NCBI GenBank assembly: GCA_904063045.1
Contig: CAJFCJ010000022.1
Coordinates: forward strand, 558,001 to 622,000
DNA from: Dimorphilus gyrociliatus
Lineage: Eukaryota; Animalia; Annelida
Direction of reading: 5' to 3'
DNA length: 64,000 nucleotides
In this document: in pieces, positions 5,612 through 33,057 of the stretch
Numbering within the stretch: position 1 is the stretch's first letter
How the letters are laid out: the number at the start of each line of letters is the position of its first letter
Program-made: the position numbers and the translations under genes
The notes under the pieces: generated by a model
Database searches by the model: none
What the model was told of the DNA's origin: nothing
What the model saw: only the letters and a program-made list of their open reading frames with translations

Positions 5612-6616
5612 TTAGTATTTTGTTAAATGCTGAATAGACACTTCATCAGTTAATATTGTTCTATTGGAGGATATCGACTGCCTCTTTAGTTGTCTCTTCT
5701 TACAAAACAATCTACTGAATCCTTCTCTAAATTGTTTACCTGTAGAACAGTAAAGATAAAAATTTAAAACCGAATTCATATGATAAAGTATCCAAGAGAT
5801 ATCGTTAAATATCTGCGCATTCCTCTCTCCCAAATATTTCTTTAGAGTTTTCCAAAAGAATGCCGTAATCATGAAAGGAGAAGTAGCCAATAAGAATATC
5901 AAAGATATAGCCAACAACATAAATGTTAAAGATTTCGCTTTGTCTTCGTCGTCTTTCTTTCTACCTGTTAGACTACTTTGAATTCCCTTCGATCTCGTAA
6001 TACTTATCAAGATGGCGATATTTCCAAAAAGGATTAATATAAAAGGTAGAAAACTTCCAACAATTCCTTGTAACCATTTCCTTATTTCGAAATGAATTGG
6101 TTCTTTATCAGAACATGCTTTTCCACTCGTTCTTTGAACAATAGTAATCGACGTCAAGTAATAAGAATTGACAATGATCATTGCTAAAAGAACAACTATT
6201 ATAGATATCCATTCCGAACGACTTGTAATCCAAACTTTCGATTTAAGTGGGAATAGAATCCCTAAAACTCTCCATCCAGTTAAAAGAACCAATAGCCAAG
6301 AGGAGGTTTTTAAAAGAATATACTTTAAATATACGATCGTCTTACATAAGAAATCGCTATAAATCCTTAAATCGAAATCGAATATGAAATCTACGTAAAC
6401 CCTAAGAAAGGCTGCGATTAAAATAAGAGAGTCGACAATTGCCAATACAATAAGGATTCTTGTTAAAGAGACTTTTCGAAAGAAGTTTGACGAAAGAATT
6501 ATGATTGAAAGAGTATTACCGACAATTCCAAGAATGAGTATTAAAGGGCATGATAGCCTATAGAAAAGATTCCTATCCCAAAAGAAATCCGGTAAAGATG
6601 ATGTATCGTTTGACAT
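5612..6616 (-). CDS. Intronless class A orphan GPCR (GPCR2), close paralog of GPCR1
   Basis: Same 7TM motifs as GPCR1. The true ATG is at 6616 (MSNDTSS); the ORF-track start at 6631 is TTG. Confidence 0.93.
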   Translation of the reverse strand: MSNDTSSLPDFFWDRNLFYRLSCPLILILGIVGNTLSIIILSSNFFRKVSLTRILIVLAIVDSLILIAAFLRVYVDFIFDFDLRIYSDFLCKTIVYLKYILLKTSSWLLVLLTGWRVLGILFPLKSKVWITSRSEWISIIVVLLAMIIVNSYYLTSITIVQRTSGKACSDKEPIHFEIRKWLQGIVGSFLPFILILFGNIAILISITRSKGIQSSLTGRKKDDEDKAKSLTFMLLAISLIFLLATSPFMITAFFWKTLKKYLGERNAQIFNDISWILYHMNSVLNFYLYCSTGKQFREGFSRLFCKKRQLKRQSISSNRTILTDEVSIQHLTKY

Positions 6617-7009
6617 GTTGTTAATCGTCAATCAATTAGCCCGGAGTGAATATCTTCTGCTGTTTTTTACCGTTAAGAAAGAAATGTCATATTCAAATTA
6701 CCTTCGCCTAATACATATTAATACGTTATACATAGAATAATTAATAGGAAATCGGTTGAGTTTGTTTATATTTAGTAATTATAAATATTCATATTGTTGT
6801 TATTGGATACTTACTCTACTTTATTTATTTACGACAAATCGTGAATAATTACTACAAATTTCGCATCATAGCAGAAATATAATAAAACTAGTCTAATAGA
6901 ACATAACTACAATGAAATTAGAATCAATTCATTCATTTTGGTATAGTATTCTATTTTACAGTCTTGTCTTCCATCATCTCCCCTGTTCATTGGACAGAAT
7001 TGAGGCATT

Positions 7010-8008
7010 TTACGGTATGGTATCGGTTGAAGACTTCTTAGTTTTACTCTTTTCGATTGATTGAAGGATTTCCATTGGTGCAAGTAATTTGAAAGTAGCA
7101 ATTCTAAATGATCTTCCAGATAGGCAATATAGATAGAAATTAAGAACGAAATTGGCATAGAAAACAAGCTGGAAAGAATGCCAGAGTATATTCTCCTTTT
7201 CAATACCAATAGCGGCTTTAATATTATCACTTTCTCTTAATAAAATCAGTGTTGGTGCTGTTGTGATCAGGAAAGTAAAGCTGATGAAAATAAACATTAC
7301 TGTTGTCGATAGAAAGTTGTCTCCCTCCGAAGTATTGTTGGTTAGAGAAGAGCGTTGTTTCGAAAATCGATTGTATTGAATAATGATCAAAATGTTACCA
7401 ACAAATATAAGAGCGAATGGTAGAAAACTTCCTATAACTTCATCAATGATCTTTTTTGAATCTAGGTATTTTTGACTCTTTGCGTAGCAGGTAACAGTAC
7501 CTTGGAATGATCCTTTGGTTATTCCCACGAGGAGGAAAGCGTTAAGACAGAATGAAAATAAGAAAACTACACCCACTGCAATCCTCTCTGCCTTCTTCGT
7601 CATCCACAATTTTGCCTTTAAGGGATATAGTAAGCTTAGAGCTCTCATCCAAGTTATAAGTACAATTAACCAAGCAGATGATTGTAAGAACCAATACAGC
7701 AAGAAAACGTTTATCTTGCACATGGCTGACGAACTGGTACGAATGTCTTTCCCAGAAATTGATATTGCAAGCTGCCTTAGACCACCTATAAGCAAAGCTA
7801 AAAGGTCCGATGCCGCCAAGGAAGTCATTGCTATCGATGTTGGTACTTCTCTGAAGAAACGAGATCTCCAAACGTACATAGAAAGAGAATTTCCAACCAA
7901 ACCAAAGAATATAAGGAAAGAAAATCCCATCATGTAAACTACGTTTAACTTCCATGTCAAACTTGAATAGTCAATAGCTGGACAAGAACTGGAACTGTTG
8001 TCTGACAT
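7010..8008 (-). CDS. Intronless class A orphan GPCR (GPCR3), more divergent paralog
   Basis: 332-aa 7TM ORF with GLVGN, LAASD, SSAWLIV, GSFLPF and NFVLNFYLYC..G..FR, shared with GPCR1/2. Confidence 0.92.
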   Translation of the reverse strand: MSDNSSSSCPAIDYSSLTWKLNVVYMMGFSFLIFFGLVGNSLSMYVWRSRFFREVPTSIAMTSLAASDLLALLIGGLRQLAISISGKDIRTSSSAMCKINVFLLYWFLQSSAWLIVLITWMRALSLLYPLKAKLWMTKKAERIAVGVVFLFSFCLNAFLLVGITKGSFQGTVTCYAKSQKYLDSKKIIDEVIGSFLPFALIFVGNILIIIQYNRFSKQRSSLTNNTSEGDNFLSTTVMFIFISFTFLITTAPTLILLRESDNIKAAIGIEKENILWHSFQLVFYANFVLNFYLYCLSGRSFRIATFKLLAPMEILQSIEKSKTKKSSTDTIP

Positions 8009-9900: not shown

Positions 9901-12900
9901 TCAAATTTCCTTTTTCTTTGGTTCATTCCCTTGTTCATCAATTTTCTGCAAGAGCCAGTAAGTTGTCATCTCTCCTTTGCCCTATTTTATCATTTATCAA
10001 CAGAGGCCATTATTTTATACGCTTTCTTCAAATTTAATAACTTATATACAACTCTTTTCGTCTATTTAATACCTTTATGGGAATACTTCCTCGTTCTTCT
10101 ATCTTGTACCCTCCTCCCGCTACCTTTTCTAGAGCGTCTTTTGTAAAAGGACTCAGGTGAACTTTTGATGGTTTTCCGTTACTTTCCATAATATTTGCAG
10201 TAATAACTGTATCTCCGAATAAACAATATCTACGAACGAAAAGGTCGTCAAATATTTCAAGGTTGACAGTTTTTTCCAGACTTACCTGGGCATTGTTTGG
10301 CCAACAACTCCAGCTGCGCAAGGGCCGGTATGAATACCTATTCTTAAATGTATTGTCAAATCTGGTTTGTGCCTGACTTGAAAACTTCCGACGCTTTTCG
10401 ACAAGTGTAGGGCAACGTCGGCTATTTCTATCACGTGTTTCATTCCATTTCGACGCGGGGCGCCCGACACTACCTGCAATGATTTTGTTTGTTATGGTGT
10501 CATAATGGAAAGCCTACTTAGATTATATAAAGAAAAAAACATACAACATACGCATCTCCAATCGTTTCAACTTTATAAACGTCATACAAACTTAAAATGT
10601 CATCAAACAGGGTATATAAATCGTTAAGGAGATCAACAACTTGCATTGGAGAACTTTGCGAGCTAAGAGAAGTAAATCCAACAACATCGGAAAAGAATAT
10701 CGTAACTAAATCGAATATTTCTGCTTCAACTGCACAGCCACTTTTAAGTTTTTCAGCAACCATTCTATATAATATACAATTGTCTATAGTCTATTTAATT
10801 ACTAAATTACTGCTAAGCCATCTTACGGAGGTAACATTCTGTATAGGAGAGAATCGGTTTTCTTCTTTTCTTCTATAAGCATTTTAGTTCTATTCTCGAC
10901 GATTTCCTCCAAATTATTAGCATACTTTTCCAGTTTAGTTATCATTGTATCCATAATATTCGAATCCCTTTTTTATTGAATAGTTAACAATGCAATATGC
11001 TTTGCCATACATATTTATACAGTGCATATAGACAATATATATATAAGTATACATTGTGTATATTGTATATTTGCCATTTTAGTGGTTATTTAATTAACGA
11101 GCTACTTACTTTCCAATATTTATTTTGCGTACAGATTTTGTAATTTTCTCAAAATTAGGCCTATCGTGGGGATTTTCATTCCAACACTCTTTCATTAATT
11201 CTATGTATTTATCATCATCTTCGTCCAACTTTAAATCTTCTGGCTTTGTAGGTCTAAGCGGCGGTTTTTCACCATTTTTTACTCTTGTTATCAATTCTAT
11301 ATTGACATTGAGAGAAATTCAAAAGTAGATAATATAATAATAATACTATTATCTCTAGATTAAATTAATTACCTTTAGGCGAGAGAAATGTATTGAAATA
11401 TGGAAGTCCCCTAAATAGAATTTCGCTAAGAACCATAGCGAAACTATAGACGTCTCCTTCTTGATTACCTATAGGTAACGTTCCATCTTGAATAGTTAAG
11501 GGTTGAGAACGAAGAATTTCGGGGGCACACCAAAGCAGTTTTTTATAAATTTGATATTCCGCGACTCCCTCTTTTTTTAAATTTGATTGAAATTGTAAAT
11601 TCCTTAGTTGATACATTCCGTAAGAGCCAATCCTTAACACCCATCTACTATCTATAAGACAACAGCCGCTTGTCAAACTTCCGTGATATTTTAAAATTGA
11701 CGAATGAAGAAAATTCATTCCTGCAACAATGGTGAAAAGATTCAATACAATATATTTTTAATAGTCTCTCTTGAAAAACCTGATATTAAATCTTTTATTA
11801 AGGATCTCTTGAATGAACTATCCAATGTTAGATCATCATTTTCCAATATATCTTGTAGACTACCTCTTGAACAGTACATCCATAGAATGTGTGCTTTTGG
11901 AGGTTCAAGACTTAGACCAATAAAGGGATTAACATTTTCGTGATTCATCTCTTTCATCTATGTAAAAATTATATAAATATTAAAGGGTTTAGGTGAAATA
12001 CAATTGACTGTAATTTACTAATCAACTACCTCTTTAAGTTCTCTTAATCTTTCTCTTGTTAAGTTAATGGTAGCATTCTCCAGAGGAAATATTCTTACCG
12101 AGACCGTTGTACCTTTATATAACGCTAATCTGGAATAAATTTGCCCAACTGATTTTACAGATGCATTAGACGGTTGAGAAGAATTTGAATGGATACTTTT
12201 AGCACTTAAATTCACCTTTCATTGAATATACGAAGGAAAACAATGAATATTATTTTTTAAAAAAATGTTTCTTTTTACCGCGCTAAATGCCCCTTTATTA
12301 ATTAATTCGACGTCTTCGACGTTAATTTTCCAAATCATTTGATATATATCCGCTTCTAACTTTTTTCTCCTGTTAAAACAAAAGTTTTTATTTGTTTTTT
12401 TAAAAAAACAAAACTATAGATTAATAAATGTTTACCTGAAATAGATGGATATCGCTATCGATACGAGTATTAAAACTAAACATGCTACCCCAATGCTTAT
12501 ATATAGTGCATTGTTATCTGTTGAAAGATTATAATGTTATTTCAGACAGAAAGTGTTAAAAGTTAACCTGTGGGAGGAGAAGGGCAAAATTCATTGGAAA
12601 AACCACATTTAGGAACGTCGGGTGGAGGAAGGCCAGTTTCTGTCTGCCAATTGGTTTCTGAATACACTGTAATTTCACTTCCATTGCCTGATCTACCAGT
12701 TAAAATTACTTCCAACCAGGGAGTGTACTCATTCTTATCTCCGTCGAAATGCCAAACCCAATAGTCTGGTAACCTATCAGCTTTTGAATCTACTTCAATC
12801 CTACCAAATTTTGAACGTATATATCTACTTTTTGACTTTTCCATCATCCAATCAATATCTCTAACTGATTTATTAGCCTGAATGGTTTCATTCATCACAT

Positions 12901-14552
12901 TACACAGAAAATACGTCGTTTCATAAACAAATATAGCTTCGACACCAGCTGTCCAGTTATTGTTTAAATAAATGGGACTGAAGAATGGGGCTTTTGCAGT
13001 TTCAATGGGAACATCGTCCCTAAGGAATGTTTGAATACGAGATCCAGCCAATGAGCTTAGAGTTATATGTATAAGAGGCGCAAAATATTTTTTGTTTTCA
13101 ATGGAATCTCCCCAAGGTTTTGTGGTGAAGCTAGTCGGGACGCCGGAATAGTAAATGAAGGCGTAATCTTTTGCAGTCATTTTTAACTTTGCGGCAGTAT
13201 ACATCATAATTCCGATTTGTTCGGTTGAAAAGCAACAAATGACAACTAAAAGAGAGGATAGATAATGATAAAGAAAAGAGCTGAAGAAATTGTTTATTAC
13301 TAACTTCTAGCTCCAACCGCAATTCTCTTTAGATATACTTCCATCTCCTTTTCTTTTTCGTAACTATTAACAATAATCTTATCAGTAACTTTTAAATCCG
13401 ATCTTTCGTTAACCATTCGCTCAATGGATTGCGAAACCGAATTGCAGAATGACGTATGCGATATCATTAACGCAACCCTTTTCCATTTCAGATAATCTAA
13501 TAAATGGATTATTGTTGGACTCATTGTATCTAAACTCGGCAAACCGGGTCTAACAAGGTTTTTATAGATGGATTTTGTATTCAAAGTTGAATCATCCGAT
13601 CCGCTACTGTAGAGCATAATGTTTCTATAAGCTGCGTAAATTGCGGACACTTGTGTTACTTGAAAGAAAAAGTAAACAAAGGATATTATTATAAATTTAA
13701 TTAATTTATTAATTATTAATAATCATACCAGTTGAACAGAAAAATCCAAGAAGAATGTCTATATTGTCTTTATCAATCATTTGGAATACTGCTCTTGATC
13801 CTAATTGGCGAGCGCACATATCATTTGTCCACACAAGGCTAAATTAGTGATAAAGGAGATTTATTACGAATAGTAACTATTCAATATTCAATTATTTAAT
13901 CCCTTGTTCCACTCCTCTAATACATATAGCTTCTTCATTATTTCAGACTAAGGAAATTGAAGAGTTATGTAAGAAGCTCATAAGGAAAATACTTAGTGAA
14001 ACATGTTGGACAGCCGCAGAGAATTTATCTTGACTAAAGACGATAATGGTCGCATATCTGTCTTAAAGTCTGAAAGGTAATAGAGCAAAAGCATCGACAG
14101 TAAATGATTATAGAGAAGGTATTATACCTTCTGCAAAGTCAATGAAGGTTATTTTATGCTTAAATCTTAACAAAAGAATGTTGATTTAGTAAGAAAAAAT
14201 TAATTAAGATAGCATTTATGTAATAAGATAGTGTGAGATTAACGTCTAAACATCCTAAGTATACAATGTTTCCTGCGTAATATACAAAAAGTGGAGTCGT
14301 TGATTTAAAATTTCTTATACAAAATACTATTGGCAATAAATAAAATGAATTGAATTACCTTATATCCGAGTCATTACCAATTAAACCTTCTTCTCTACAA
14401 TCTTTTATTGCGACATTTATTGCACCGCCAACTGATTGAGCCGACAATGGATTGACGCCACTTGGATTGTCGAGTAGGCTAATACCTATTCTGAAGTTTT
14501 TTATAGAGAAACAATAGGGAAGAAGACAGAGGCTGAAGAATATTTTACTCAT
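9901..14552 (-). CDS. Receptor guanylyl cyclase rGC1 (natriuretic-peptide-receptor-like architecture); catalytic Asn/Arg replaced
   Basis: Spliced gene. Signal peptide [11 protein letters not shown]..., ANF-receptor-type ectodomain, juxtamembrane [12 protein letters not shown] exon near 12440-12520, kinase-homology domain ([15 protein letters not shown]), coiled coil, cyclase ([39 protein letters not shown]). Last exon [10 protein letters not shown]...KKEI*, stop at 9901-9903. Confidence 0.92.
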
Positions 14553-15778: not shown

Positions 15779-17135
15779 CTAACCAATCAACCAATAAGTC
15801 TCCATTTCACCTTTACCCTGTTATTAGATACAAACAATTATTCTGGTTATTACGAAAATTACCAAGATCAAATCACATTACTTTCACTAGAATAGATCCT
15901 CTTTTTTCAATAGTATAATCGTCTTTTGCAACCTTCTTTAAACAGTCTACGAAGTAAGAGCTAACGTGAATTTTGAATGGTTCGCCTGTACTTTCCATCC
16001 TACTTGCCGTATTAACTGTGTCGCCGAATAGGCAATACCTATTCAGGTTATTTTAAGCAATTGTTGTTTAAGCAATTATTATATATATATAGAGTATATT
16101 TAAATAATGATAATGATAGTAATAAGGAAACCTTGGCATACTGAGACCAACAACACCTGCTGCGCATGGACCAGAATGTATACCAATTCGTAAGTTCAAT
16201 TGTCTTTCTGGGGCGTGTCTAATTTGAAAACCAAGGACGCTTTTCAGCAAATGTAACGCCACTTTTGCTATTTCTCTTCCGTGGTTCATACCATTTTTTC
16301 TAGGTACACCAGAAACCACCTTTTTAAACGAAAACAAAAAAACACGTGTGCTTTTAGCTGGATAAAAAAGATAGACAAATAACAAATAAATACCATATAA
16401 GCGTCCCCTATAGTTTCAACTTTGTAAACATCGTACAAACTCAAGATATTGTCAAACAAACTATACAAATCGTTCAGAAGATTAACAATTTGTATAGGTG
16501 TACTTTCAGAGCTTAATTTTGTAAAGCCAACAACATCTGAAAAGAAGATTGTTGAAGATTCAAACATTTCAGCTTCTATTATTTCACCAGATTTTAGTTT
16601 TTCGGCTATTGTTCTATTTTCAACAATTTTAAGAATTCACCAATTTACATCTACAATTTCAAATCTTTAATTGTGTCACTTACAATGGTAGCATTCTATA
16701 CAAAAGACTGTCAGTCTTTTTCTTTTCTTCTATCAGTTCGCAAGTTCTATGTTCGACAATTTCTTCCAGATTATTAGCATATCTTTCCAGTCTTTCTATC
16801 ATAATATCCATAATATTTCTACTGTATTTTGTAAATGGTAATTAAAAATTAGCAGCTTGTAATAACCTTCATTGTTTTTTAATTGTTTATTTGCTTACTT
16901 TTCTCTAGAAAATTTTTTGATTTTTCTCAAAATAAGCTTAAAATCTGGTCGTTCTTCAGTATTCTCCGCCCAACAATCAACCATTAAACTCTCCATTAGT
17001 CTCTCTTCGTCTTTCTTTACAGAATTATCATTTGCTGTTGGTCTAAATGGTTCACCACTTACTCCTATTATTCTTTCAACGATTTCTGTGTGATATTTAA
17101 CTTCTTAGTTCTTCCAATAATAGTCATTCTCTTTA

Positions 17136-17170
<35 letters not shown>

Positions 17171-20100
17171 TTTTATTATAGTTTACTTACCTTTCGGAGT
17201 TAATTCGCAATTGAAAAATGGCATTCCTCTATGAATAATTTCCCAAAGTATAATTCCAAAACTATAAACATCTCCCCCCTGACTTCCCATAGGTAGAGTA
17301 AGTTCAGTGTAATTTGTCAAATGTTCCCTTAGTAATTCTGGCGCGTGCCATAAAAGTTTCCTATAAGCTTCGTATTCTCCCGTTGTACTATCCCGAATGT
17401 TTGATTGAAATCGAATATTCTTTAAATCGTATAGGCCAAATGAACTGATTTTCAATGTCCATCGACTATCAATTAAACAACATCCACTCGACAGATTCCC
17501 ATGAAATTTCAAAGAAGATGAATGAATATAATTCATTCCTGTAAATATTCACAATCGTAAATATTGAAAAGACAATTGCAGATATTGCAGATAGTTTATA
17601 TATATATATTGAAATTGAACATTATAGTTTATTAGTATGCTGTAGCGGGGAATGGAAAGACATACCTGACGCCAGATCAGAAATTAAAGACTTTTTGAAA
17701 AGATTATCGAGAGCAATATCATCGTTTTCGAGAATATCTTGAAGACTTCCCTTAGAACAATAAGTCCACAATATATGCATCTTATTACTTTCAAGACATA
17801 TACCAACAAACGAATTGAGATTAACGTGTCGAATTTCAACCATCTTGATTTTATTGAAAAGATAAAGATAGGCATAAAAGTGAGCAAGAAGAAAAGGAGA
17901 GAGAAAAACCTCTTTTAATTCAATCAACTTTTGTCGATTAAAAGGAAACGCAGTATTATGATTAGTATTAATTTCTTTAACTGCGACTGTTGATCCTTTA
18001 TAAGTCGCAATTCTTGTGTAGACCTGTTTCTCCAAATTCATTATCTTTGAACGTTGCGAGTAGTCAGAGCGTAGACTTTTAGCGCTGAGGCTCAACTATA
18101 AATATAGCGTTTGTTAGAATAAAGTGTTTGCTATCAATTTAAAGATGGAAGTATTTTATATAAAGATGTTAAAACAGTGTAAACGCAGAAAAGTAACTTT
18201 CGTATAAAGAATAATTGTTAAATTTCGTCCAAAATCTGAAAGTTAAGTTTATTCTGCGTATACTACTGTACTCTTAAGTTTGTTTATACAGAGCTTATAG
18301 CTCCTCTTTGAAGATTTCGTATATCTTTGATATCAATTTTCCATCTCATTTGCTGCAGTTCAATTTCTTTCCTCTTCCTTCTGTTTTATTATTTATTATT
18401 GTTATTTTTCGTTTTGTTTTTCTTTCTTCTCCTTTATTTCGAAAGAGAAATAGAAGAGTAGAAAGAATAATTTAACTTCCCTACCTAAAGATAAACAAGG
18501 CTACAACAAAGGAAATAACCAGGAATATGATAACTGAAGATGCAGCAATATATATAGGCCTATTATCTGCAAGAATGTGAAAGAATTCATTAAATAGTAA
18601 AGAAATCTATAAATCATAATTGTGTCATCTTTATTGAACCTTTAGGCGTTGGCGGGCATAATTCGTGTTTAAAGCCGCAAAGAGGAATATCAGGGGGAGG
18701 TAGCTGGTTCTTTGTTGACCACTTGTGGTTATAAATAGTATTTATTTCGGACCTGTTTGAGTGAATTTCCGTATTAAAGGTAATATTCAGCCATTGACGA
18801 TACGATCCCGTAGTTGTATCGTATCTCCAAAGCAAATAATTGGGCAATCTATCGCCATTAGAGTCGATAGTACCATCTCCAAATTTTGTTTTGAACTTTC
18901 TATTTTTGGTAATACTCATCATCCAATCAATATCTTTAACGCTTTTCCCTTGAGAAACAGTTTCGTTTATGATATTACAGAGTAAATAGGTGACTTCGTA
19001 GGCAAACACCGAATAACCAGTTACTGTCCAATTTTTCTCCAAATATTCCCTCTTATAGAATGGATACTTGGATGACTCGAGCGGAATTCTGCTTAGAAAC
19101 TTATCAACTGTCGGTCCGGCTAGAGAACTAAGAGTTAATTGTATTAATGATTCAAAGCCGTCTTTAATCTTTTTTTCTTCATTATTCTTAATAATATTGC
19201 CCCAAGGTCTGACCGTAAACTCATCTGGAACTAGAGTAAAATAGAGAAAAATGTACTGATTAGCCGACATTCCGAGCTTATTAGCGATCTGGATCATTTC
19301 CCTTATCTGAATTTGTCTCAAACAGACAACGACAACTGATAAAGGAGAATAAGTTTTAGGTTTCTAAAGTTTGATTGAAAAGAAGGAGCTTACTTCTGGA
19401 AGTCATGGAAATTTTACGTAGCGCTGATTCTAAGGCATCTTTTGAATCGTTCAGTTTCATTAAAAAAGTCTCTGCCAAGCGGAAATCTTTACGATTTCTG
19501 ATGATATTCTCTACAGATTTTATACCCAAACCACAATAATTTTCCGATACACTCATAATTGATACTGTCTTCCAATTGAAGTGTTCTAATACCTTAACAA
19601 CACTGAAGCCAATTGTATCGATATTCGGAGCTCCGGCTCTAACAAGATTAGCGTAGATAGTTTTGTTTTGTAAATCTCGATCAGCAGAAGACATACTATA
19701 AACCATGATATTTTTATATAGAGCATAAGGTGCTGTGAGTTTGGTAACTAGAGAAAAAGATAAGGTAATTAGTGTTTCATAGGAAGAAATCTACGTCATT
19801 TTCTATTTAAAACAAATTGCTAACCCCAAGAACAAACAGTTCCTAATAGTATATCAACTTTCTCTTGCTCTATAAGATCAAAGTGTACCTTCGGTCCATT
19901 TCTCGAATCGCAAAAGTCATTTACCCAAACCAGACTAACAGAAATTACAAATAAATTCTCTTCTATTCTCCTTAGTAATAAATCAATGTTTCTACTATAA
20001 ATCAGAAATAGTTTACCTTAATTTGTAGGTTCGATTCACTAGGTCATTTCGTCTACAATCTTCCAATGCAATATTGATAGCTCCTCCAAAAGTTTGCACG

Positions 20101-20258
20101 GTAAGTGGAGACTGACTAAAAGAATCATCCAACAAAGCCGCTCCCACCTTTATTTCCACTGAACAGATACAACCCCTGAAAAGAAAGATTGCAGAGAAGA
20201 AGAGAAACATGCTCGTATTGTTTATCAGTCGAAATAAACTCGAAAATGGCCGTTCCAT
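15779..20258 (-). CDS. Receptor guanylyl cyclase rGC2
   Basis: Same exon architecture as rGC1. ATG at 20258 or 20210. Cyclase motif [16 protein letters not shown] is intact (about 15990-16050). Last exon [12 protein letters not shown]. Confidence 0.93.
17118..17777. repeat. 660-bp tract in rGC2 identical to 22126-22785 in rGC3
   Basis: Base-by-base reading found no mismatch. The offset is a constant 5008 at both ends. The tract includes intron sequence and a (CT)12 microsatellite. Confidence 0.9.
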
Positions 20259-20655: not shown

Positions 20656-21831
20656 TTATTGTCTTCTTTTTCTTCTTCCTTGTCTCTTTATTTTTCTCTC
20701 TTCTCAATTAGCCAGAAAGTTTGCATATCACCTTTACCCTGCATTTATTAATAATAATAGTGTTATTTTTTGTTTATAATTTTCTATACTGCTATGTTTT
20801 AATTTACCTTTACAAATACGGTTCCTCGACTTTCCATTTCATATGAATTTGGAGCCGCCAGTTCCAAATGCTCTTTGAAATACGTACTTACATGGATTTT
20901 AAATGCTTCACCTGTAGTCTCCATTCTACTTGCAGTATTTACAGTATCTCCAAAAAGACAATACCTGTATATTTCATTATTTCGGTTGTATATACAGTAT
21001 GTATACTATGTTCGTTATTATTGTTATTATTGTCTTTAGTATCAATATTGTTATTGTTTCTTTTACCTGGGCATTATGAGTCCAACAACTCCAGCTGCAC
21101 AAGAACCCGTATGAACTCCGATACGAAGTTGGAGCTTAAGATCTTGTCTATGCTTTATCTTAAAAGTATAAACACTGCCAAGCAATGCCAATGCCATATT
21201 TGCAATTTCGATAGAGTGTTTGTTTCCGTTTTTTCTTGGAATGCCAGACACAACCTGTTGTATATTGATATATGGTTATACTACATGTATACCGTTATAT
21301 ACTGTTACCATATAAGCGTCTCCAATCGTTTCCACTTTATATACATCGTATTGATTCAATATCCCATCAAAAAGGCTGTAGAGATCGTTAAGCAAAGTAA
21401 CAATTTCCATTGGCGTACTTTCGGAGCTAAGAGAGGTAAACCCGACAACATCAGAGAAGAATACAGTTGCCGATTGGAATATTTCCGCTTCTATTGCTTC
21501 GCCCATCTTTAATTTTTCTGCTACAGTCCTATAATGATTTATCATTTAGCATTTTTTCTTGAGAACACAACAATCATTTCAAAGTATCTAATTAAAGCAC
21601 ATCTTGTCTATAGATTGAAATAAAATAATATTTACGATGGTAGCATCCTATAGAGCAGCGAGTCAGTTTTCTTCTTCTCTTCAACCAATTCTTTTGTTCT
21701 TGACGTAACTATCTCCTCAAGATTATTAGCATACTTCTCAAGCCTTTGTAGCATAACATCCATAATGTTGCTACCTCTGCAAACAATTAGCACAGTTATT
21801 AATAAAATGATACGGTAACTTTGCAAAAGCA

Positions 21832-21867
<36 letters not shown>

Positions 21868-22143
21868 TTCCAAATTTATTTGAAGGTACTAACTTTCCAC
21901 CAAGTATTGATTTTACTCTTTTCGCAATTTTACCGCAATGTGGTCTTGAATGCGCATTTTCATTCCAACAATCAATCATTAAACTTGAAAATTTAACTTC
22001 ATCATCTTGTAATTCTATTCCTTTTGGAGATACAGGCCGAAAAGGTTCGCCATTTTCTGCTTTAATTTTCTCAACAATTTCTGTGTTAATCATCTCAATT
22101 ACACACAAATATTATTTATGTTCATTAATAGTCATTCTCTTTA

Positions 22144-22178
<35 letters not shown>

Positions 22179-25100
22179 TTTTATTATAGTTTACTTACCT
22201 TTCGGAGTTAATTCGCAATTGAAAAATGGCATTCCTCTATGAATAATTTCCCAAAGTATAATTCCAAAACTATAAACATCTCCCCCCTGACTTCCCATAG
22301 GTAGAGTAAGTTCAGTGTAATTTGTCAAATGTTCCCTTAGTAATTCTGGCGCGTGCCATAAAAGTTTCCTATAAGCTTCGTATTCTCCCGTTGTACTATC
22401 CCGAATGTTTGATTGAAATCGAATATTCTTTAAATCGTATAGGCCAAATGAACTGATTTTCAATGTCCATCGACTATCAATTAAACAACATCCACTCGAC
22501 AGATTCCCATGAAATTTCAAAGAAGATGAATGAATATAATTCATTCCTGTAAATATTCACAATCGTAAATATTGAAAAGACAATTGCAGATATTGCAGAT
22601 AGTTTATATATATATATTGAAATTGAACATTATAGTTTATTAGTATGCTGTAGCGGGGAATGGAAAGACATACCTGACGCCAGATCAGAAATTAAAGACT
22701 TTTTGAAAAGATTATCGAGAGCAATATCATCGTTTTCGAGAATATCTTGAAGACTTCCCTTAGAACAATAAGTCCACAATATATGGGCCTTATTGTTCTC
22801 AAAGGATAACCCAACAAATGAGTTGATATTGCCATGATTCATTTCTTTCATCTAGAAAAGATTTTAATGAAGAGTTAAATAGATAAGAAACGAAGACTTA
22901 AGAATAAGTTTGTTACTTGTTTCAATTCCATCAATTTGAAACGATTCAAGTTTAAGGAACTTTTGGGAAAATCAATGGTCTTGACAGATACCGTAAGATT
23001 TTTATACACTCCAACTTTAGTATAGACTTGTTTCGTCATTGTGATTTTTGAAACGTCTGACACTTCCGATTTGAAGCTTTTCATACTCAGATTTAACTAT
23101 AATAGTAGTTTAATAAAACAAAGAAATTTGTACATTGTGTTTTTAATCTTTGCAAAAGCCAATAAGGAGTTATGCTATACTCACATTAAGAGTGCGTTAT
23201 CTATATATAGATATATAAAAGAATGCTATTTAAAATATTACTTACGAGACTAAAGGCTCCGTGGTTAGACATTTGAACGTCTTTTATGTCAATTTTCCAT
23301 AGCATCTGCTGAAGTTCTGCCTCTAGTTTCTTCTTTCTATAGCATGTAATAAATTACTTTATGACTTTGGCAATGTCAAAAACAAGATCTGTTATTAAGA
23401 ACTAGGACTTACTTATATATAAGAACCGATATGATAACTATTACCAATATAATTATTAAGGAAGCAACGACTGCAACGAAAACTGCTATGTTATCTAAAA
23501 GATAAAAAGCAATAGAAGATGTAAATGAAATGATAAAGTTATGCTGCGTTTGGTAACTTTACTGGTTGATTCTGGTGGACAAAATTCATTCCGAAAACCG
23601 CATTTGGGAGCATCAAGAGGGGGAATATTATCTTTTGTAGGCCAAAGTATTTTCTGTTGTTCTACAATTCGAACTGATTTTCCATTGCTAGTTGTTAGTA
23701 TAATGTCCATTATTGGCTTATACTCATCATCACCACTTACATAGTACCAAAATGTGTAATCGGGTATACGATCGCCTTGAGAATCCATTGCCAAGCTTCC
23801 GAATCTTGTAGAAAATACTTTGTTGCTTGACACTTTCATCATCCAGTCGATATCTCGATAACTCTCTCCCAATGCGATAGTTTCGTTAAGCACGTGGCAA
23901 AGAGTATAAGCAACGTCATAGCCGAAAATACTATTTTTAATCGCTCTCCAACTATTATTTAAGTACAACGTTTCATAAAATGGTGATTGAGCCGACAATT
24001 TGGGAACCTCTGTTCTGAAATGATCAACTTCTGGTCCAGATAAATCGCGAGTGGTAATTTGAACAAAAGAAACAAAATTATCTTTTAATTCCTTTTGATT
24101 ATCTCTTCCTGTGATATTTCCCCAAGGAGTTGTCGTAAAACTACTCGACGTACGATCATAGTAGAGAAATACATATTTATCCGCTGTCATACCTAAGATC
24201 CTAGCTTTTTCCATCGAAGTTCTCATTTGTCCTTGAGATAGACAAATAATGATAACTTTGAAAAAAAAGATAATTATAGCTTTTCAGAATAGCAAACATT
24301 AAAATTTTTAGCTTTACTTCTAGCTCTTTGTTTTATCCTTCTCAAAAACGTTTCAATATCATCTGCAGTATCACTTGATAGTACAGATATTTTCTCGACG
24401 AGAATCAAGTCTCTTCTCTCCCGTAGAATACTTTCCAAGGATTTTACGCCATAACCGCATAGTGCGCTATCTCTGACTAATAGAGATACCTTCGACCATT
24501 TAAAATGATCCAAAACTCCAATAATAGCTTTACCGAATGTATTAAAAGTTGGTAAACCTGCCCTTATTAGGTTTGTGTAAATACTCTTATCGTCCAGTAG
24601 GGGGTCGGCGGAAGAGACGGTGAAAATTGTTACATTTCTATAGCCGGCATAAATTGATGAAATACCAGTAACTAGGTAGATGAGGGGAGAAAGAAATTAT
24701 TATAATTATTATACGCAAAGATTGATAGAGCAAATTAATGGAACAGGTGGATAGATAGACAAATGTAACCATATAGAGAGATCTATTAGAAAATAGTAAA
24801 AAGTAAAGCTTGGATAAGACCTGTTGAACAAACAGTTCCAAAAATAATGTCTACGTCTGCGTCTTCAATCATTTTGAATTGGTTAATTGATCCTGAGAGA
24901 GGGCTGCATGTATCTCTAGAATAGTAGAGACTAATCCAAATTGAAAAGAAAGAAAGTTGAAAATAAAGTAGAGAAAAAGCATTTCAAGGTAAGATAAAAA
25001 GTGAAAAAGTTACCTTATGTTGTAAGTTTTTCCGAGAAGATTGTTTTGTCTGCAGTCATTAAAAGCCAACTTGATTGCACCCGCTAAGGCTTCAATGGAA

Positions 25101-25234
25101 TACGACCAAAGTGATCGGGAACGTGTTAAAGCAACTCCAATTTTTACATCTTTTTCCAAAGAAAAACTTTGAAATAAATAGAAGAAGACGAAAAGAATTA
25201 ATCTTGCCATTTTCCTCCATAGAATGCCAGTCAT
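20656..25234 (-). CDS. Receptor guanylyl cyclase rGC3
   Basis: ATG at 25234 or 25210 followed by a signal peptide, ectodomain, TM, kinase-homology domain and an intact [16 protein letters not shown]. Last exon [10 protein letters not shown]...RRQ*. Confidence 0.93.
21834..21864. repeat. (TA)n microsatellite in an rGC3 intron
   Basis: About 31 bp of uninterrupted TA repeat. Confidence 0.9.
22126..22785. repeat. 660-bp tract in rGC3 identical to 17118-17777 in rGC2
   Basis: Second copy of the tract above. ORFs 17183-17536 and 22191-22544 translate identically. Confidence 0.9.
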
Positions 25235-25996: not shown

Positions 25997-28900
25997 CTAG
26001 GTAGTCTTGTTAATCAGCCAATATGTCGTGATTTCTCCTTTTCCCTGTTTAAGCAATGCATGTGTTTTAATTTGAATCTATAATAAAAAAAAACAGCTTT
26101 TTATTATAACCTTGACATTGATATTCCCACGAAGCTTAATTTCATAGTTTCCTTGAGCTACGGTTTCAAGGGTCTGTTTACAATAACTCGACATGTGTAT
26201 CTTCAATGGTTCGCCAGTACTTTCCATTCTGCTCGCCGTGTTCACTGTATCACCAAACAAACAATATCTTGGCATTTTTAAGCCCACAACCCCAGCCGCA
26301 CAAGGTCCAGTGTGAATACCAATTCTAAGATTTAACTTTAAACCTGGTTTATGGCGAACTTCAAACGTAAGAACGCTTTCCAATAAATGAAGAGCGACAT
26401 TAGAGATTTCTACAACATGCTGCAAGTCATTCCGTGAAGGAATTCCAGAAACAACCTAAAGGTAAAACCATCGAAGATAATTTATTATAATCATATAATA
26501 ATGGCATATAGCTATAATATTTATACCATATATGCATCGCCGATAGTTTCAACTTTATAGACATCGTACAAATTCAATATACCATCAAAAAGCGTATATA
26601 AATCATTCAATAGATTCACAATCTCAATTGGCGAACTTTCCGAGCTGAGTGCAGTAAATCCAACAACATCCGAAAAGAATATTGTGGCCGAATCGTACAT
26701 TTCAGCTTCTATGATTTGTCCTCTTTTCAGCCGATCAGCAATAGTACTGAATATAACACAAACAAATAGTATAACATGCATAGTATTATCTTAAGTATAC
26801 GAATAAACTGCAAAATAAAAAATAGAACATAATGAGCAATAATTCCACTCTCTCTCTCTCTCTCTCCTAATACGGATTGTAATGGTAAAATAGTCTGGAT
26901 GAAAACTCTACACTTACGGTGGTAGCATGCGATATAGTAAACTGTCGGTTTTCTTCTTCTCTTCTACTAATTCGTTTGTTCGTGTTTCGACGATTTCCTC
27001 CAAATTGTTCGCGTACTTTTCTAACTTTTTTATCATTATGTCCATCAAATTTTGAGTTCTAGAGTAGATTGTTGAAAAATTACAATTATTAGTTATATTA
27101 GACAACAGATGGCGTTCTGGTGCGGAGAGTTCAAGTATACTCTTACTTTCCTGAGGAAAATCCCCTTATATTCTTTGAAATTTTAGAAAAACTAGGTCGA
27201 TCTTCCGGATTTTCGTTCCAGCACTCTTTCATGAGTTCTTCTATTTTGTGCCCTTCCTCATTCGATTGAAAATCTTTCGGGCACGTAGGTCTAAATGGAG
27301 GATTACTATTCTCTATTACTTTAGCAACTATCTCTGTAGAGATGAGAGTTAGAAGATAATTAATTGTAAAGGTAAAAGGTGGGAATATCGTATTGAAACC
27401 TTTAGGTGATAAATATGTCATAAAGAACGGTAATCCTCTGTATAAAATTTCACTTAGAATCAAGCCAAAAGCATAAACATCTGCTTCTTTAGAACCAAGT
27501 GGCAGGGATAATTGTTTGAAGTCTTGACAGCATTCTTTTAGTATCTCCGGTGGAAACCAGAGAAATTTTTTAAATATTTCATAATCTCCTCTGTCTTCCT
27601 CCTTTAAAGCTTCTTTCAATAGCAAAGCCTCCAAGTCATGACATCCGTACCAGCTTATTTTTAAAGACCATCTACTATCAATTAAACAGCACGAGCTGGT
27701 TAAATGTCCGTGAAATTTTAAGATTGACGAATGCAAAAAGTTCATTCCTGAAGAGATAAATTATCAATTGAATAGTTATTGTTCAAGCTTATCGTTATTA
27801 AATACCCGCAGCCAAATCGCTAATAAGAGATGTCTTGAAGAAACTGTCCAATTGAATATCCCCATTTTCTAGAATATCTTGCAGACTTCCCTTTGAACAA
27901 TATTTCCAGAGTATGTAGATGCGAGTTGGTGTTATACTAAGACCGATAAAACTGTTTAAATTTCCGTGATTCATTTCTTTCATCTATTCAAAAGTGAAGA
28001 GAACTGTTATCTTTACATGTTGGAATTGAAAACTATCTTTTTTGTATATAACCTCTTTTAATTCCTTTAATCTATTCATATGAAAGCTGATATTCGGTCC
28101 GGAAACAGCAACTGACTTAATTGCAACAGTTAAACTTTTGTAAAGACCAATCTTGGTATAAATTTGATTTTCGCCAATGCCATCTTCAGTCGAACGAAAG
28201 ATATCCGATATATTCGACTTGAAACTTTTCATACTTGACATAACCTATTTATTAGAGTGGAAACGAGGCTGATATTTTGAAAAGAATAATAAAATTACGC
28301 TATGGGTAGCCTTGTTCATGATTTGAACATCATTCATATCAATTTTCCATACTTTTTGACGTATTTCAAATTCAATTTTCTTTCTCCTAAACAAGTTGTA
28401 TTTATACGAAATAATCGTGAACAGTGAACATTTAAGAAGGAGAAAGGAAGATAAAAGTTTTACCTAAAGTAGATGAAAATTGACAAAGATATCGAAATAA
28501 CAATGATCGCAACCAGAGTAGAAGCAATTGGAATCAATACTTTACTGGAATCTGTTTGGGAGTTAGAAATTAACGCTCTAGGCATGCGAATCTTTTTTAT
28601 AGAGAAGGAAAAATTAGATGTTTTGCTTAATAACAATAAATATAAAAGTCTATTTTAAGATGAACATAAACGAATGTACTTTACGTACTTTTTCTACATT
28701 TGATAATCTATTTCTTTGAGCGTAAATTTGATATTAGACTGTTAGGATTGTTCATACAAACTTAAACATACTAGATTACTCTACCTGTGGTTTCTTGTTC
28801 GCATTTTTCTCCTCTAAAACCGCAAAGAGGTGTATCTCTGACAGGTAAACCATCTTTTGTCATCCATGGAAGGTAATTTTGCTCCTTTACTAATGTTGTA

Positions 28901-30435
28901 TTTCCCAAGCCTTTTGTTAAACTTACGTTCAACCAATGTTGAAATTCTGATTTTTCTCTATTATAACGCCATACCCAATAACCAGGAAGTCGGTCGGCGT
29001 TAGAATCCAATTCTATTCGCCCGAATCTTCCAGTAACATAACGGTTCTTTGATTGACTTATCATCCATTCAATGTCGTGTACATCTCGATTATTCTCCAC
29101 AGATTCGTTTAACAAATGACAGAGAAAGTATGTAGTGTCATACGCAAAAATACTATAAATCGAAGCCGTTCGATTCATATCTTGATAATCCGATATAAAA
29201 AATGGAGATTTAGCCGTCTGTTTTGGCACTTCTCCTAGAAAATAGTCAACATATGGTCCAGCCAACGAAGATAGACTTATAAAGAGTAGAGACTCGTAGG
29301 CATTCTTTATTTCTTGAGCATTCGGTTGATCATCAACTTCGCTTCCCCAAGGAGTCTTTATGAAATTACTTGGAAATGCCATAAAAAATAGGAATACGTA
29401 TTCCGTTTCGTCCATATTCAATATCTTTGTTAGATGAAAAAGTGACCTTAATTGGTCAGTAGTCAAGCAAACGTAAATAACTGAAAATAGAGAAGATAAA
29501 CTATAAAATGAAAAAGAGAAATCATCTTAACGAATACTTCTCGCTCTTTCGGATATTCTCTTTAACGCCTCCTTTATGTCGTTTTCACCAGAATTTACAC
29601 CAAGAATAATTCTATCCGATAAAAGTAAATCATTTCTCTCAAGGAAAACACGATTGATAGAACTAAGACTAAATTCGCAACCTCCCAGTTCTAGAGTTAC
29701 CATAGCCATTCTCCTCCAGTTGAAATTATCCATTATTCGGGCGATAGTATCCCCTATAGTATAGTAGCTTGGTACACCAGGTCTTACTAAGTTATTATAA
29801 ACATTTTTATCATCCAACTTTACATCAGAAGACGAGGAGCTCAATAATAGAACGTTTTTGTAGCTTGCGTATACAGACGATATTAGCGTTACTGAAAAGA
29901 CACAACAGTTACGGTAATTAAATCGTAGTCAAGTAAATCTTAGTCAGGGTAGCCAATCTTCTCTTTCAAATATTATTCTATATTAGTTTTCAGTAGAAAA
30001 GACTGAAAGAAAGTAAAGGTACAAGAAATACCTCTAGAGCATAGACTTCCTATTATAACATCAACATTTTCGTTGTCAATCAATTCGTATTGGGCCTCTG
30101 GTCCTAATCTAGAATCGCACTTGTCATCTGTCCATATTAGGCTGCGGAAGGTGTGAATATAGAAAAAAGTTTACTGTTTCTTAATAAACGATTTTGTTAG
30201 CTTTGCCGTATTGTCTTTACCTTATATTGATCTTATCAAGTAGGCCCTCAGCTCTACAATCCGACAAAGCAATTGTAAAGGCTCCTCCAATTGAATCGAC
30301 GGAAAGAAATTTTACAAATCCAGGTGAATTCAATTCTGATTTTGCCAAACTCATCCCAATTTTGAATGAGGTCATGGTAGAAACCATAACAAAGTTGAGA
30401 GAAATTATTAATAATATCAACAGAAAGCGAGGCAT
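25997..30435 (-). CDS. Receptor guanylyl cyclase rGC4
   Basis: ATG at 30435 ([11 protein letters not shown]), same architecture, intact [16 protein letters not shown]. Last exon [15 protein letters not shown]. Confidence 0.93.
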
Positions 30436-30950
30436 CTTTGTCTCCCCGTCAAACTCTCGCCACTTTATAAAGAAGAATAACAATACTATATTTTTTTTAC
30501 CTTATTTATGTTTAATAAAATCGCAAGATGTCTCTGTCAGATGAAAATAAGTAAAGAGAGATAAATAGAAAAGCTTAAAGCTGGCAGGAAGTAGACGCGA
30601 ATCTCAATTTACAAATGGATGTGATAGACATATTTTATATTTTGTAATAAAAAACTTTCTACGACTTTGGTATAAGAGACGTTATAATAGATTCACTCTT
30701 CAAAGGAATTAATTATAATCAATGCCAAAATGCAATTTTTCATACTCTGATCTGAAAGGGAATCCTTTTTTGATTTAGATTCGTCCTTTAAAGGCGGTTA
30801 TGGTGAGGTGTTTTAATTATCTTAAGAGAGCGGAATAGGATTATATGAACTTTTGTGGCAAATATTTTTTTATTTGGTTCAAATAAAATTGAAAATTAGA
30901 TAAGTATAAAAACAATAATAAATAACAAACAGTGGCTAGTCTCGGTTCAA

Positions 30951-32369
30951 CTATTCCCTATCAAGAGTTTGATTTGTTTTATCGGTACAATCTACGACAC
31001 GGGGTTCGTTTACTTCCAAAGGTAGAGTATGAACTTGTAGGCCTGTTAAGAAGGAAGATACTTCCCATAGCTTTTTCGCCACTGATAAACTCTTTGCCTG
31101 AATACTTTCTCTTGCGAGTGAACACTTTTCAAAATATCTACCCGTGATTGTCTTAACTCTATCGTCGACGGCCGCATAGACTATTGTTTGAGCAGCAGCA
31201 TTTGCGTCAATTAACACTGGTTTAACCATCATTCGGATTAGAAAACAAAACCACGGCGGCCATTTGTAAGCCATTCCTTTCCAAAGTTCGGTATCGACAC
31301 CTCCAGGATGAACAGCGTTGGCCGATACTCCAAACTGAGCGAGTCTCCGTGCCAATTCTTTCGCGTGCAATATATTAGCTAATTTACTGATTTCATATCC
31401 GGATAAATGAGGATAGAGAGTATCTTCGTCGCCTTTATCGAATCTAATTAAGGAAACAATATATACTTTTATAAGAGCATCGACACCTTTCCTACGCCTA
31501 CATTATTAGCCTGAGTTAGATATAGTAAAGTCACAAATATGTAGTGCGTAGCTTTCTATACTATTTTCACTTTATTAAAGGATTGATAAGGAGATTGCAG
31601 ATAAGAGTAGTAGTAGTATATTAGTACATCATACCTTAATGGTCCCGGTACGAGTATATGTGCCAATGAAGAAACTATAACGATTCGAGCTGGAGCAGAT
31701 CTTTTTAAATGATTAACCAATAATTCAGTCAACAGAAAATGACCCAAGTGATTTGTGCCAAAGCACAAATCATACCCGTCAACCGTCTTTTCGACGTTAC
31801 TATAGGCAATAGCGGCGTTGTTTATTAGAATATCGAGTCGTTGTTCGCAAGAAGTAAACCAGATGGCAAACTGTCTTACTGAAGATAAATCGGATAAGTT
31901 TAACTTTTTCCAGAAGACACTTGAATTTTTTGATAAATCTGAATAAACACGCGATAAAATATTAATTGATAAAGAAGTTAAAGTTAATTAAGTCAGCATA
32001 ATTTTAAGAATAGGCCTACTTTTAATATAATTAACACTTTCGAGTCCTTTTTCTTCATCTCTACTAGCAGTGATAACTCTCGCCCCCCTCTTTGCCATAT
32101 CTAGTGCAACCTCTCTTCCGATACCCGAAGAGGCTCCTACGGAAACAAAGGATGAAGAAACACATAACATCAAACTATTTAACATGAGCGATATTTAGGA
32201 TTGTAAGAAAATGATCGAACTTCTCCTTACCAGTAATTAAAACAGTTCTTCCATCTAATCTATTCATACTGGAACAATAGACTTTTCTTCCGAAATGGAA
32301 ATAGGCAACTGCATAAGCTATAATTATACCACAAATTAAGGGAAGGCATATCACTAAGAGAATGTTCAT
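30951..32369 (-). CDS. Retinol dehydrogenase 11/12/13-like short-chain dehydrogenase/reductase
   Basis: N-terminal membrane anchor, spliced TG|ASSGIG Rossmann motif, LDILINNAA, FGTNHLGHFLLT, catalytic YEISK (YxxxK), VHPGGVDT. Confidence 0.93.
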
Positions 32370-33057
32370 CGTAAACAAAAAAAAAATTAAGACAGTAGGA
32401 GGCGCTTCTGTACCCGGTCAATAAATAATCATAACGAACGATATGTTCAGACAAATATCTTTCTTTCTCTTTACTATGGCTCCATCTACAGGACATTTAC
32501 GTTACGAACCGTTTGTGTTACACGGGAAATGTTTGCAGTAGATGTTTTACGGATTGATGACGGCCGCTCTATATTCGATATGAATATGATATCCGGAAAT
32601 TTGAAGCGGCAGCAATATTAATTAGTAAGATGAGTTTTAGAGTAAATTTAATTGGTTTTAGTTTGTAATCTATTTCTTTTCCAGTTAGGTGTTGAGTGGT
32701 CAGTTTGTCGGCCGTCTGGCCAGTCATCCAGGGGTAGAAGAAGAAACGAATTTAAATAGACGCCCTAAATCCTAAAAGTATGATTTATAAGTCTTAAAGG
32801 AATATTTTCAAAGGAAATTGAAACAATGAAATAAACGTTATTCGTCAGTGATCTAATACAAATAAATTGATTTTTAGTATCGTTCGATTAAGGAAAAGAT
32901 TAAAAGCGTCTAAATTATAGTCGATAAAAAAAGACATCAAATGCTAAATGAGAAATTTATTACACCAACATCTTTCTAAGCTGAACACGCGAAAATCACT
33001 TCCGTCAGACTAATAATAATTTATTCCTCGTAAACTGCGTATCAAATAGAGCCAGTT

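Follow-up and report, generated by a model that had tools for sequence, protein, structure and literature searches.

What becomes of a receptor guanylyl cyclase (GC) in which two residues of the active site have been replaced is the question raised by rGC1, one of four neighbouring receptor GC genes in a 64,000-nucleotide stretch of the genome of Dimorphilus gyrociliatus, a tiny marine annelid (NCBI GenBank assembly GCA_904063045.1, contig CAJFCJ010000022.1, positions 558,001 to 622,000 of the forward strand), hereafter the window, to whose numbering all coordinates refer. Sequence comparison leads us to favour, at a probability of roughly 0.6, the reading that rGC1 is a functional, ligand-sensing half-site subunit of the alpha/C1 type, which would need a partner bearing the NxxxR motif. 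No paper linking D. gyrociliatus with guanylyl cyclases was found in the literature searched, and to our knowledge receptor GCs are generally treated as homodimers, the nematode ODR-1/DAF-11 pair apart.

Class III cyclases are described by eight key positions, of which the metal half of the site (C1 of adenylyl cyclase, AC, or the alpha subunit of soluble GC, sGC) holds two Asp and one Arg, and the other half (C2, sGC beta) holds the pair of base residues, the ribose Asn, the phosphate Arg and a Lys (PMC6005667, Table 1). In rGC1 these positions read D876, E916, D920, R967, C988, I995, I999 and K1040. The degenerate NxxxR segment (10181..10228, minus strand; 16 codons read from 10228 to 10181, beginning tat tgt, ending gaa agt and with att act gca aat att at the NxxxR positions) was aligned to human GC-A (9bcl), GC-C (8fx4) and Chlamydomonas Cyg12 (3et6), all of which have a canonical NxxxR in a segment beginning with Y or F, as do rGC2, rGC3 and rGC4 at the aligned positions. 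Ile995 (10204-10202, codon ATT) stands in place of the ribose Asn, Asn998 (10195-10193, AAT) in place of Ser, and Ile999 (10192-10190, ATT) in place of the phosphate/transition-state Arg, all on the minus strand. A first-pass annotation of the window had reported these Ile/Asn/Ile replacements and had named the lost residues as the catalytic Asn and Arg; the letters bear out the former, and the class III ribose Asn and phosphate Arg of PMC6005667 (Table 1) the latter. Its estimate of about four base changes, too many for a single read error, also agrees with our count, the canonical paralogue codons being AAT/AAC, AGT/AGC and AGG/AGA against ATT, AAT and ATT in rGC1.

The remaining key residues, also on the minus strand, are in place, as the same annotation had stated for the metal-binding Asp pair and the guanine-specifying residues. 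The first metal-binding Asp, Asp876 (FFSDVVGF, 10686..10688), is equivalent to Asp486 of sGC alpha, and Arg967 (LRIGIH, 10342..10344) to the phosphate Arg of sGC alpha (Arg574) and AC C1 (Arg484) (PMC6005667, Table 1). The second metal-binding Asp, Asp920 (ETIGDAY, 10554..10556), follows four residues after the base-specifying Glu916 (10568-10566); Glu916 and Cys988 align with the guanine-specifying Glu/Cys of GC-A and the paralogues, and Lys1040 (KGKGEM, 9976..9978) corresponds to the phosphate Lys that the beta/C2 half supplies. rGC1 thus lacks the complete one-chain catalytic set (two Asp, Arg, Asn, Arg and Lys), the Asn and second Arg being gone, and shows the alpha/C1 half-site pattern, in which D876, D920 and R967 are kept and the NxxxR pair is lost. 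Judged by its sequence features, rGC1 belongs to the receptor GCs by descent and architecture, yet is not a canonical enzyme.

Gene models were obtained by enumerating GT..AG junctions with frame continuity and picking those common to the paralogues. The rGC1 gene (9901..14552, minus strand) comprises 15 exons (14552-14359, 13838-13729, 13658-13305, 13245-12568, 12517-12436, 12369-12279, 12215-12030, 11957-11780, 11720-11373, 11296-11110, 10967-10827, 10764-10545, 10473-10286, 10229-10073 and 9981-9901, from exon 1 to exon 15) and encodes 1064 aa, with every intron GT..AG and no internal stop, so that the first-pass description of an otherwise intact frame stands; the models of rGC2-4 are likewise free of internal stops, with GT..AG introns throughout. 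Pfam domains assigned to the rGC1 exons are ANF_receptor (PF01094, E 1.2e-09), the extracellular ligand-binding domain, on exon 3, PK_Tyr_Ser-Thr (PF07714, E 9.6e-08), the kinase-homology domain, on exon 9, and Guanylate_cyc (PF00211) on exons 12, 13 and 14, while a single putative transmembrane helix, a 22-residue hydrophobic stretch followed by RRKK, was read by eye from the sequence. With its ANF-receptor ectodomain, transmembrane helix, kinase-homology domain and class III cyclase domain, rGC1 has the architecture of an animal receptor (membrane) GC. The NCBI product, of 949 aa and also listed with an ANF-receptor domain, corresponds to our model from Met116 on, and this independent pipeline therefore supports exons 3-15, on which the two models agree. 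The public rGC1 model is without exons 1-2, which hold the signal peptide (13617-14552).

The same replacements were found in a related species (species B). An exhaustive representative search with the rGC1 ectodomain exon 4 returned an open reading frame (ORF) of 214 aa with 70% identity, which occurs in Logan assemblies. Searching by words from exon 12 yielded a match of 93%, whereas the region of exon 14 had no match in a word index. The species-B orthologue (orthB) lies whole on a 6.65-kb contig (L005) and encodes 1053 aa in 15 exons, with all introns GT..AG and at positions matching those of rGC1, and its contigs from five runs are 100% identical over their overlaps. It carries the same Ile/Asn/Ile (ITANIME), keeps the counterparts of D876, D920 and R967, and has an unchanged FFSDVVGFT P-loop. 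In every exon orthB is nearer to rGC1 than to rGC2-4, and the clade of rGC1 and orthB received 100/100 support in the tree. Because both genes carry Ile/Asn/Ile, all divergence between them post-dates the NxxxR loss, and for the same reason, a derived state held in common, it is immaterial to the argument whether the two are orthologues or old paralogues. The species-B contigs that hold the rGC1 and rGC2 orthologues do not overlap. A Tara metagenome contig (L010, protein P0091), considered as a third member of the rGC1 lineage, was rejected on its canonical motif and its other intron positions.

Selection since the loss was assessed from raw proportions of nonsynonymous and synonymous differences (pN and pS) against a matched canonical control, the synonymous divergence (dS) between rGC1 and orthB being saturated and dN/dS consequently rough; among rGC1-4, dN/dS was uninformative for the same reason. 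Overall, rGC1 and orthB differ with pS 0.71 and pN 0.148 (pN/pS 0.21), and in the cyclase domain with pN 0.076 and pN/pS 0.10 at 89.1% identity. Identity was 90% in the coiled-coil, 77% in the transmembrane and kinase-homology regions and 64% in the ectodomain, where dN/dS was about 0.13 (rough). The control, canonical rGC2 against its species-B orthologue (contig L007, canonical motif), showed 83.8% identity and pN/pS 0.107 over exons 12-15; exon 14 was 86.5% identical between rGC1 and orthB, and 69% between rGC2 and its own orthologue. Across the 12-codon motif stretch, rGC1 and orthB show 5 synonymous and 0 nonsynonymous differences, the first Ile being ATT in one and ATA in the other. Purifying selection on the rGC1 orthologue, proposed as a check in the first-pass annotation, is thus borne out: the gene is not evolving neutrally. 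The 62 private substitutions of rGC1 compare with 43-65 in the paralogues, those in its cyclase domain number 17 and are mostly conservative, and the pN of that domain against the paralogues (0.18-0.23) is like that of pairs of canonical copies.

With a cyclase pN/pS of 0.10 against 0.107 in the control, and only synonymous changes in the motif, selection on the degenerate domain is, as estimated from these alignments, at least as strong as on an intact one. The constraint on the ectodomain suggests, in turn, that rGC1 still binds ligand. The half-site state has persisted through very long divergence, and selection on it has been just as strong as on a complete enzyme; these comparisons are good evidence that it is functional and not merely tolerated.

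How such a subunit would work can be drawn from the family. The cyclase domain of rGC1 would give its two metal Asp and its phosphate Arg to an active site at the dimer interface, the ribose Asn and transition-state Arg of NxxxR being no longer supplied by it. We infer that an rGC1 homodimer would make little or no cyclic GMP, because the NxxxR Asn and Arg are reported to be essential (Yan et al. 1997, as cited in PMC12264004 and PMC6005667) and because the catalytic domains of the chytrid receptor NeoR, which are without NxxxR, showed no activity (PMC12264004). Pairing with an NxxxR-bearing subunit would create one competent site, built from the Asp residues of rGC1 and the Glu, Cys, Asn, Arg and Lys of the partner, and would leave a second, degenerate site as a non-catalytic and possibly allosteric pocket. 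Heterodimers of this kind are predicted from the residues, and the candidate partners include the adjoining rGC2-4.

The closest residue pattern is that of sGC alpha1. The human (GUCY1A1; 4ni2_A, 3uvj_A, 6jt0_A) and Manduca (6pas_A) subunits, like rGC1, retain the two metal Asp together with the phosphate Arg but have lost the NxxxR Asn and Arg. The PDB sequences of both read YCLFG(N/H)NVTLANKFES, with Thr in place of Asn, Asn in place of Ser and Lys in place of Arg, which agrees with the deficit (NVTLANKFES) that the first-pass annotation had ascribed to sGC alpha. The Ser to Asn change is held in common, and in both proteins Glu and Cys are kept though not serving the active site. However, sGC alpha is cytosolic, with H-NOX and PAS domains and a beta partner that is itself degenerate, whereas rGC1 is a receptor that crosses the membrane once and combines an ANF-receptor ectodomain with a kinase-homology domain; the substitutions are Ile/Ile in rGC1 against Thr/Lys in sGC alpha, and rGC1 keeps the phosphate Lys that is absent in alpha. 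In the tree the rGC1 loss arose inside the receptor-GC clade, independently of sGC alpha. An Asn directly before the lost Arg was acquired independently in both (TANI in rGC1, residue 998; LANK in alpha1, 4ni2_A and 6pas_A), and degenerate sites may be convergent in this respect.

Three further systems divide an active site in a comparable manner. NeoR (neorhodopsin), which pairs with RGC1 or RGC2, has T455/K459 where NxxxR would be and provides the metal Asp of the one active site, to which its partner brings the base-discriminating residues and NxxxR, the degenerate site being allosteric (PMC12264004). Like rGC1 it is a membrane receptor-cyclase without NxxxR that keeps its metal Asp; it differs in its rhodopsin sensor and fungal origin, and in that heterodimer and asymmetry have been shown experimentally, where for rGC1 they are inferred. 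Caenorhabditis elegans ODR-1/DAF-11 is described as an obligate heterodimeric receptor GC (PMC5225109, PMC8045692; Morton 2004 as cited there), and several rGCs of that species are without key GTP-binding or Mg-coordinating residues, for which combinatorial ligand binding has been discussed (PMC8045692). Going by that description, ODR-1/DAF-11 resembles rGC1 in its order of ectodomain, transmembrane helix, kinase-homology and cyclase domains and in having missing catalytic residues supplied by a complementary partner, but it belongs to the nematode lineage and both of its partners are described as incomplete, whereas the neighbours of rGC1 are complete. In transmembrane adenylyl cyclases (tmAC), C1 supplies Asp396, Asp440 and Arg484, and is without the Asn, Arg and Lys, and the degenerate second site binds forskolin (PMC6005667, Table 1; PMC12264004); unlike rGC1, these enzymes join C1 and C2 in a single chain and are specific for ATP.

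The half-site idea is established by ODR-1/DAF-11, sGC alpha/beta, tmAC C1/C2 and NeoR/RGC1, and rGC1 is a further case of it and no new principle. The first-pass annotation had proposed a membrane-receptor analogue of the sGC alpha/beta system; residues, gene integrity and selection fit a half-site subunit, but the novelty implied falls away, since ODR-1/DAF-11 and NeoR/RGC1 precede it.

Distant full-length relatives of the rGC1 ectodomain extend the comparison. Three of eight are degenerate: in Saccoglossus kowalevskii, XP_077863909.1 (P0032) has the NxxxR Arg replaced by Ile with Asn and metal Asp kept, and XP_006819914.1 (P0044) has the first metal Asp replaced by Asn with Asn and Arg kept, while XP_019626200.1 of Branchiostoma has a degenerate metal half. 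On this ground half-site receptor GCs, as judged by their residues, recur in animals. The Saccoglossus proteins are, like rGC1, receptor GCs with half-site defects; they differ in being from a hemichordate and related at family level only, with about 25% identity over the ectodomain exon. With complementary defects in one genome, the two would make a candidate obligate pair outside nematodes, and no study of XP_077863909.1 or XP_006819914.1 was found in the literature searched.

Several points weigh against the half-site reading of rGC1. rGC2-4 are complete enzymes with the full catalytic set, none of them showing the complementary metal-half defect of the ODR-1/DAF-11 type, and because they do not need rGC1, nothing forces it into heterodimers with them. 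Glu916, Cys988 and Lys1040 are kept though superfluous for a pure alpha/C1-type subunit (sGC alpha also keeps Glu and Cys). The Ile/Asn/Ile state is carried by two sequences only, so that per-residue conservation is weakly sampled, and exact look-ups of the D. gyrociliatus exon-14 and exon-4 ORFs gave no matches and hence no independent contig from that species. Six sequencing runs are listed, none of them recorded as RNA; in one run the share of sampled words present, 0.66, equals that of exons in the stretch sampled (3195 of 4801 bases), from which one might guess at a transcriptome. The clustering of rGC1-private substitutions around the motif was not significant (P about 0.09).

The strongest competing explanation, which we consider unlikely though worth serious weight, is that rGC1 is a non-catalytic pseudo-enzyme acting as a ligand sink, scaffold or dominant-negative that lowers the output of its paralogues. 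The loss of NxxxR fits this, as does the self-sufficiency of the neighbours, whose competent sites would be halved by pairing with rGC1; conservation of the whole protein would also be expected of a regulatory subunit, and with just two sequences the conserved motifs may be structural as well. However, conservation in rGC1 is highest in the cyclase domain (89%), and the metal Asp pair, the FFSDVVGFT P-loop and Arg967, all superfluous for a decoy, are unchanged in both species. A regulatory or decoy role would be hard to tell from a half-site role without assays, but appears to fit the unchanged metal-half residues less well.

It is less probable again, and we regard it as improbable, that rGC1 cyclises GTP alone, at a lower rate or with substitute residues such as Asn998 taking over ribose binding. 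The change from Ser to Asn at 998 does put an Asn three residues, or one helical turn, past the lost one, and the beta/C2 half still has its Glu916, Cys988 and Lys1040. Yet sGC alpha has the same change (TLANK) and needs its beta subunit, the lost Arg has no basic replacement, Ile999 being apolar, and the NeoR catalytic domains without NxxxR are inactive (PMC12264004).

A recent inactivation of rGC1, with decay into a pseudogene under way, is very improbable: two catalytic residues are lost and the public annotation misses the first two exons, but the 15 exons of rGC1 hold no stops or frameshifts in an AT-rich genome, its private substitutions do not exceed the range in the paralogues, and the loss is common to species with saturated synonymous sites, with a cyclase pN/pS equal to that of the canonical control. 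Orthologue comparison and control effectively refute it. An assembly or sequencing artefact, which would require four separate base changes in a window identical to the NCBI contig over rGC1, is excluded in practice, because an orthologue sequenced independently, in five runs, has the same three residues and differs synonymously in the first Ile codon (ATT against ATA).

If rGC1 is a half-site subunit, a broader and more speculative proposal is that a heteromeric receptor-GC system has arisen independently in dinophilid annelids, and that within it rGC1 pairs either with several complete neighbours or with a metal-half-deficient rGC as its true obligate partner; we think this rather doubtful. 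Were it true, pairing with complete neighbours would provide a combinatorial ligand logic, with the dead site as an allosteric pocket like that of NeoR/RGC1, and pairing with a metal-half-deficient rGC would mean that a spiralian had invented the ODR-1/DAF-11 arrangement anew; the two Saccoglossus proteins with complementary defects would then make heteromeric rGCs recurrent across animals. Because the degenerate rGC1 has three complete paralogues next to it, in an annelid that is compact and can be cultured, receptor-GC heteromerisation and a possible allosteric dead site are approachable outside nematodes.

A six-frame motif scan of the window found four cyclase domains, all on the minus strand. 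Besides rGC1 these belong to three canonical paralogues with full catalytic sets, rGC2 (15779..20258, 1071 aa, NxxxR segment at about 16.0 kb), rGC3 (20688..25210, 1058 aa, NxxxR segment at about 20.9 kb) and rGC4 (25997..30435, 1069 aa in 14 exons, NxxxR segment at about 26.25 kb). The public model DgyrCDS12963 (459 aa) covers the rGC2 ectodomain only and is 100% identical to residues 17-467 of our rGC2 model (gene at 15779-20258); the present models correct the public ones of both rGC1 and rGC2. Between MPR and YCLFG, rGC1-3 and both species-B genes are interrupted by an intron that is absent from rGC4 (exon 13, 26111-26455), a loss in a single paralogue. A repeat finder showed 300 nucleotides of rGC2 and rGC3 to be 100% identical (17115-17414 against 22123-22422), and in the translated fragments the identical peptides continue beyond this on the upstream side, over the region of exons 8-9. 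Elsewhere the two proteins are about 57% identical; the pattern of identity points to a recent gene conversion.

Two intronless genes for rhodopsin-family G protein-coupled receptors (5615-6631 and 7013-8008; 339 and 332 aa), both with Pfam 7tm_1 and the first also Srw-like, adjoin the rGC cluster on its downstream side and share its minus strand. Upstream of rGC4, at about 30950-32420 on the minus strand, frame fragments with a GASSGIG...NNAA... pattern suggest a candidate short-chain dehydrogenase/reductase gene.

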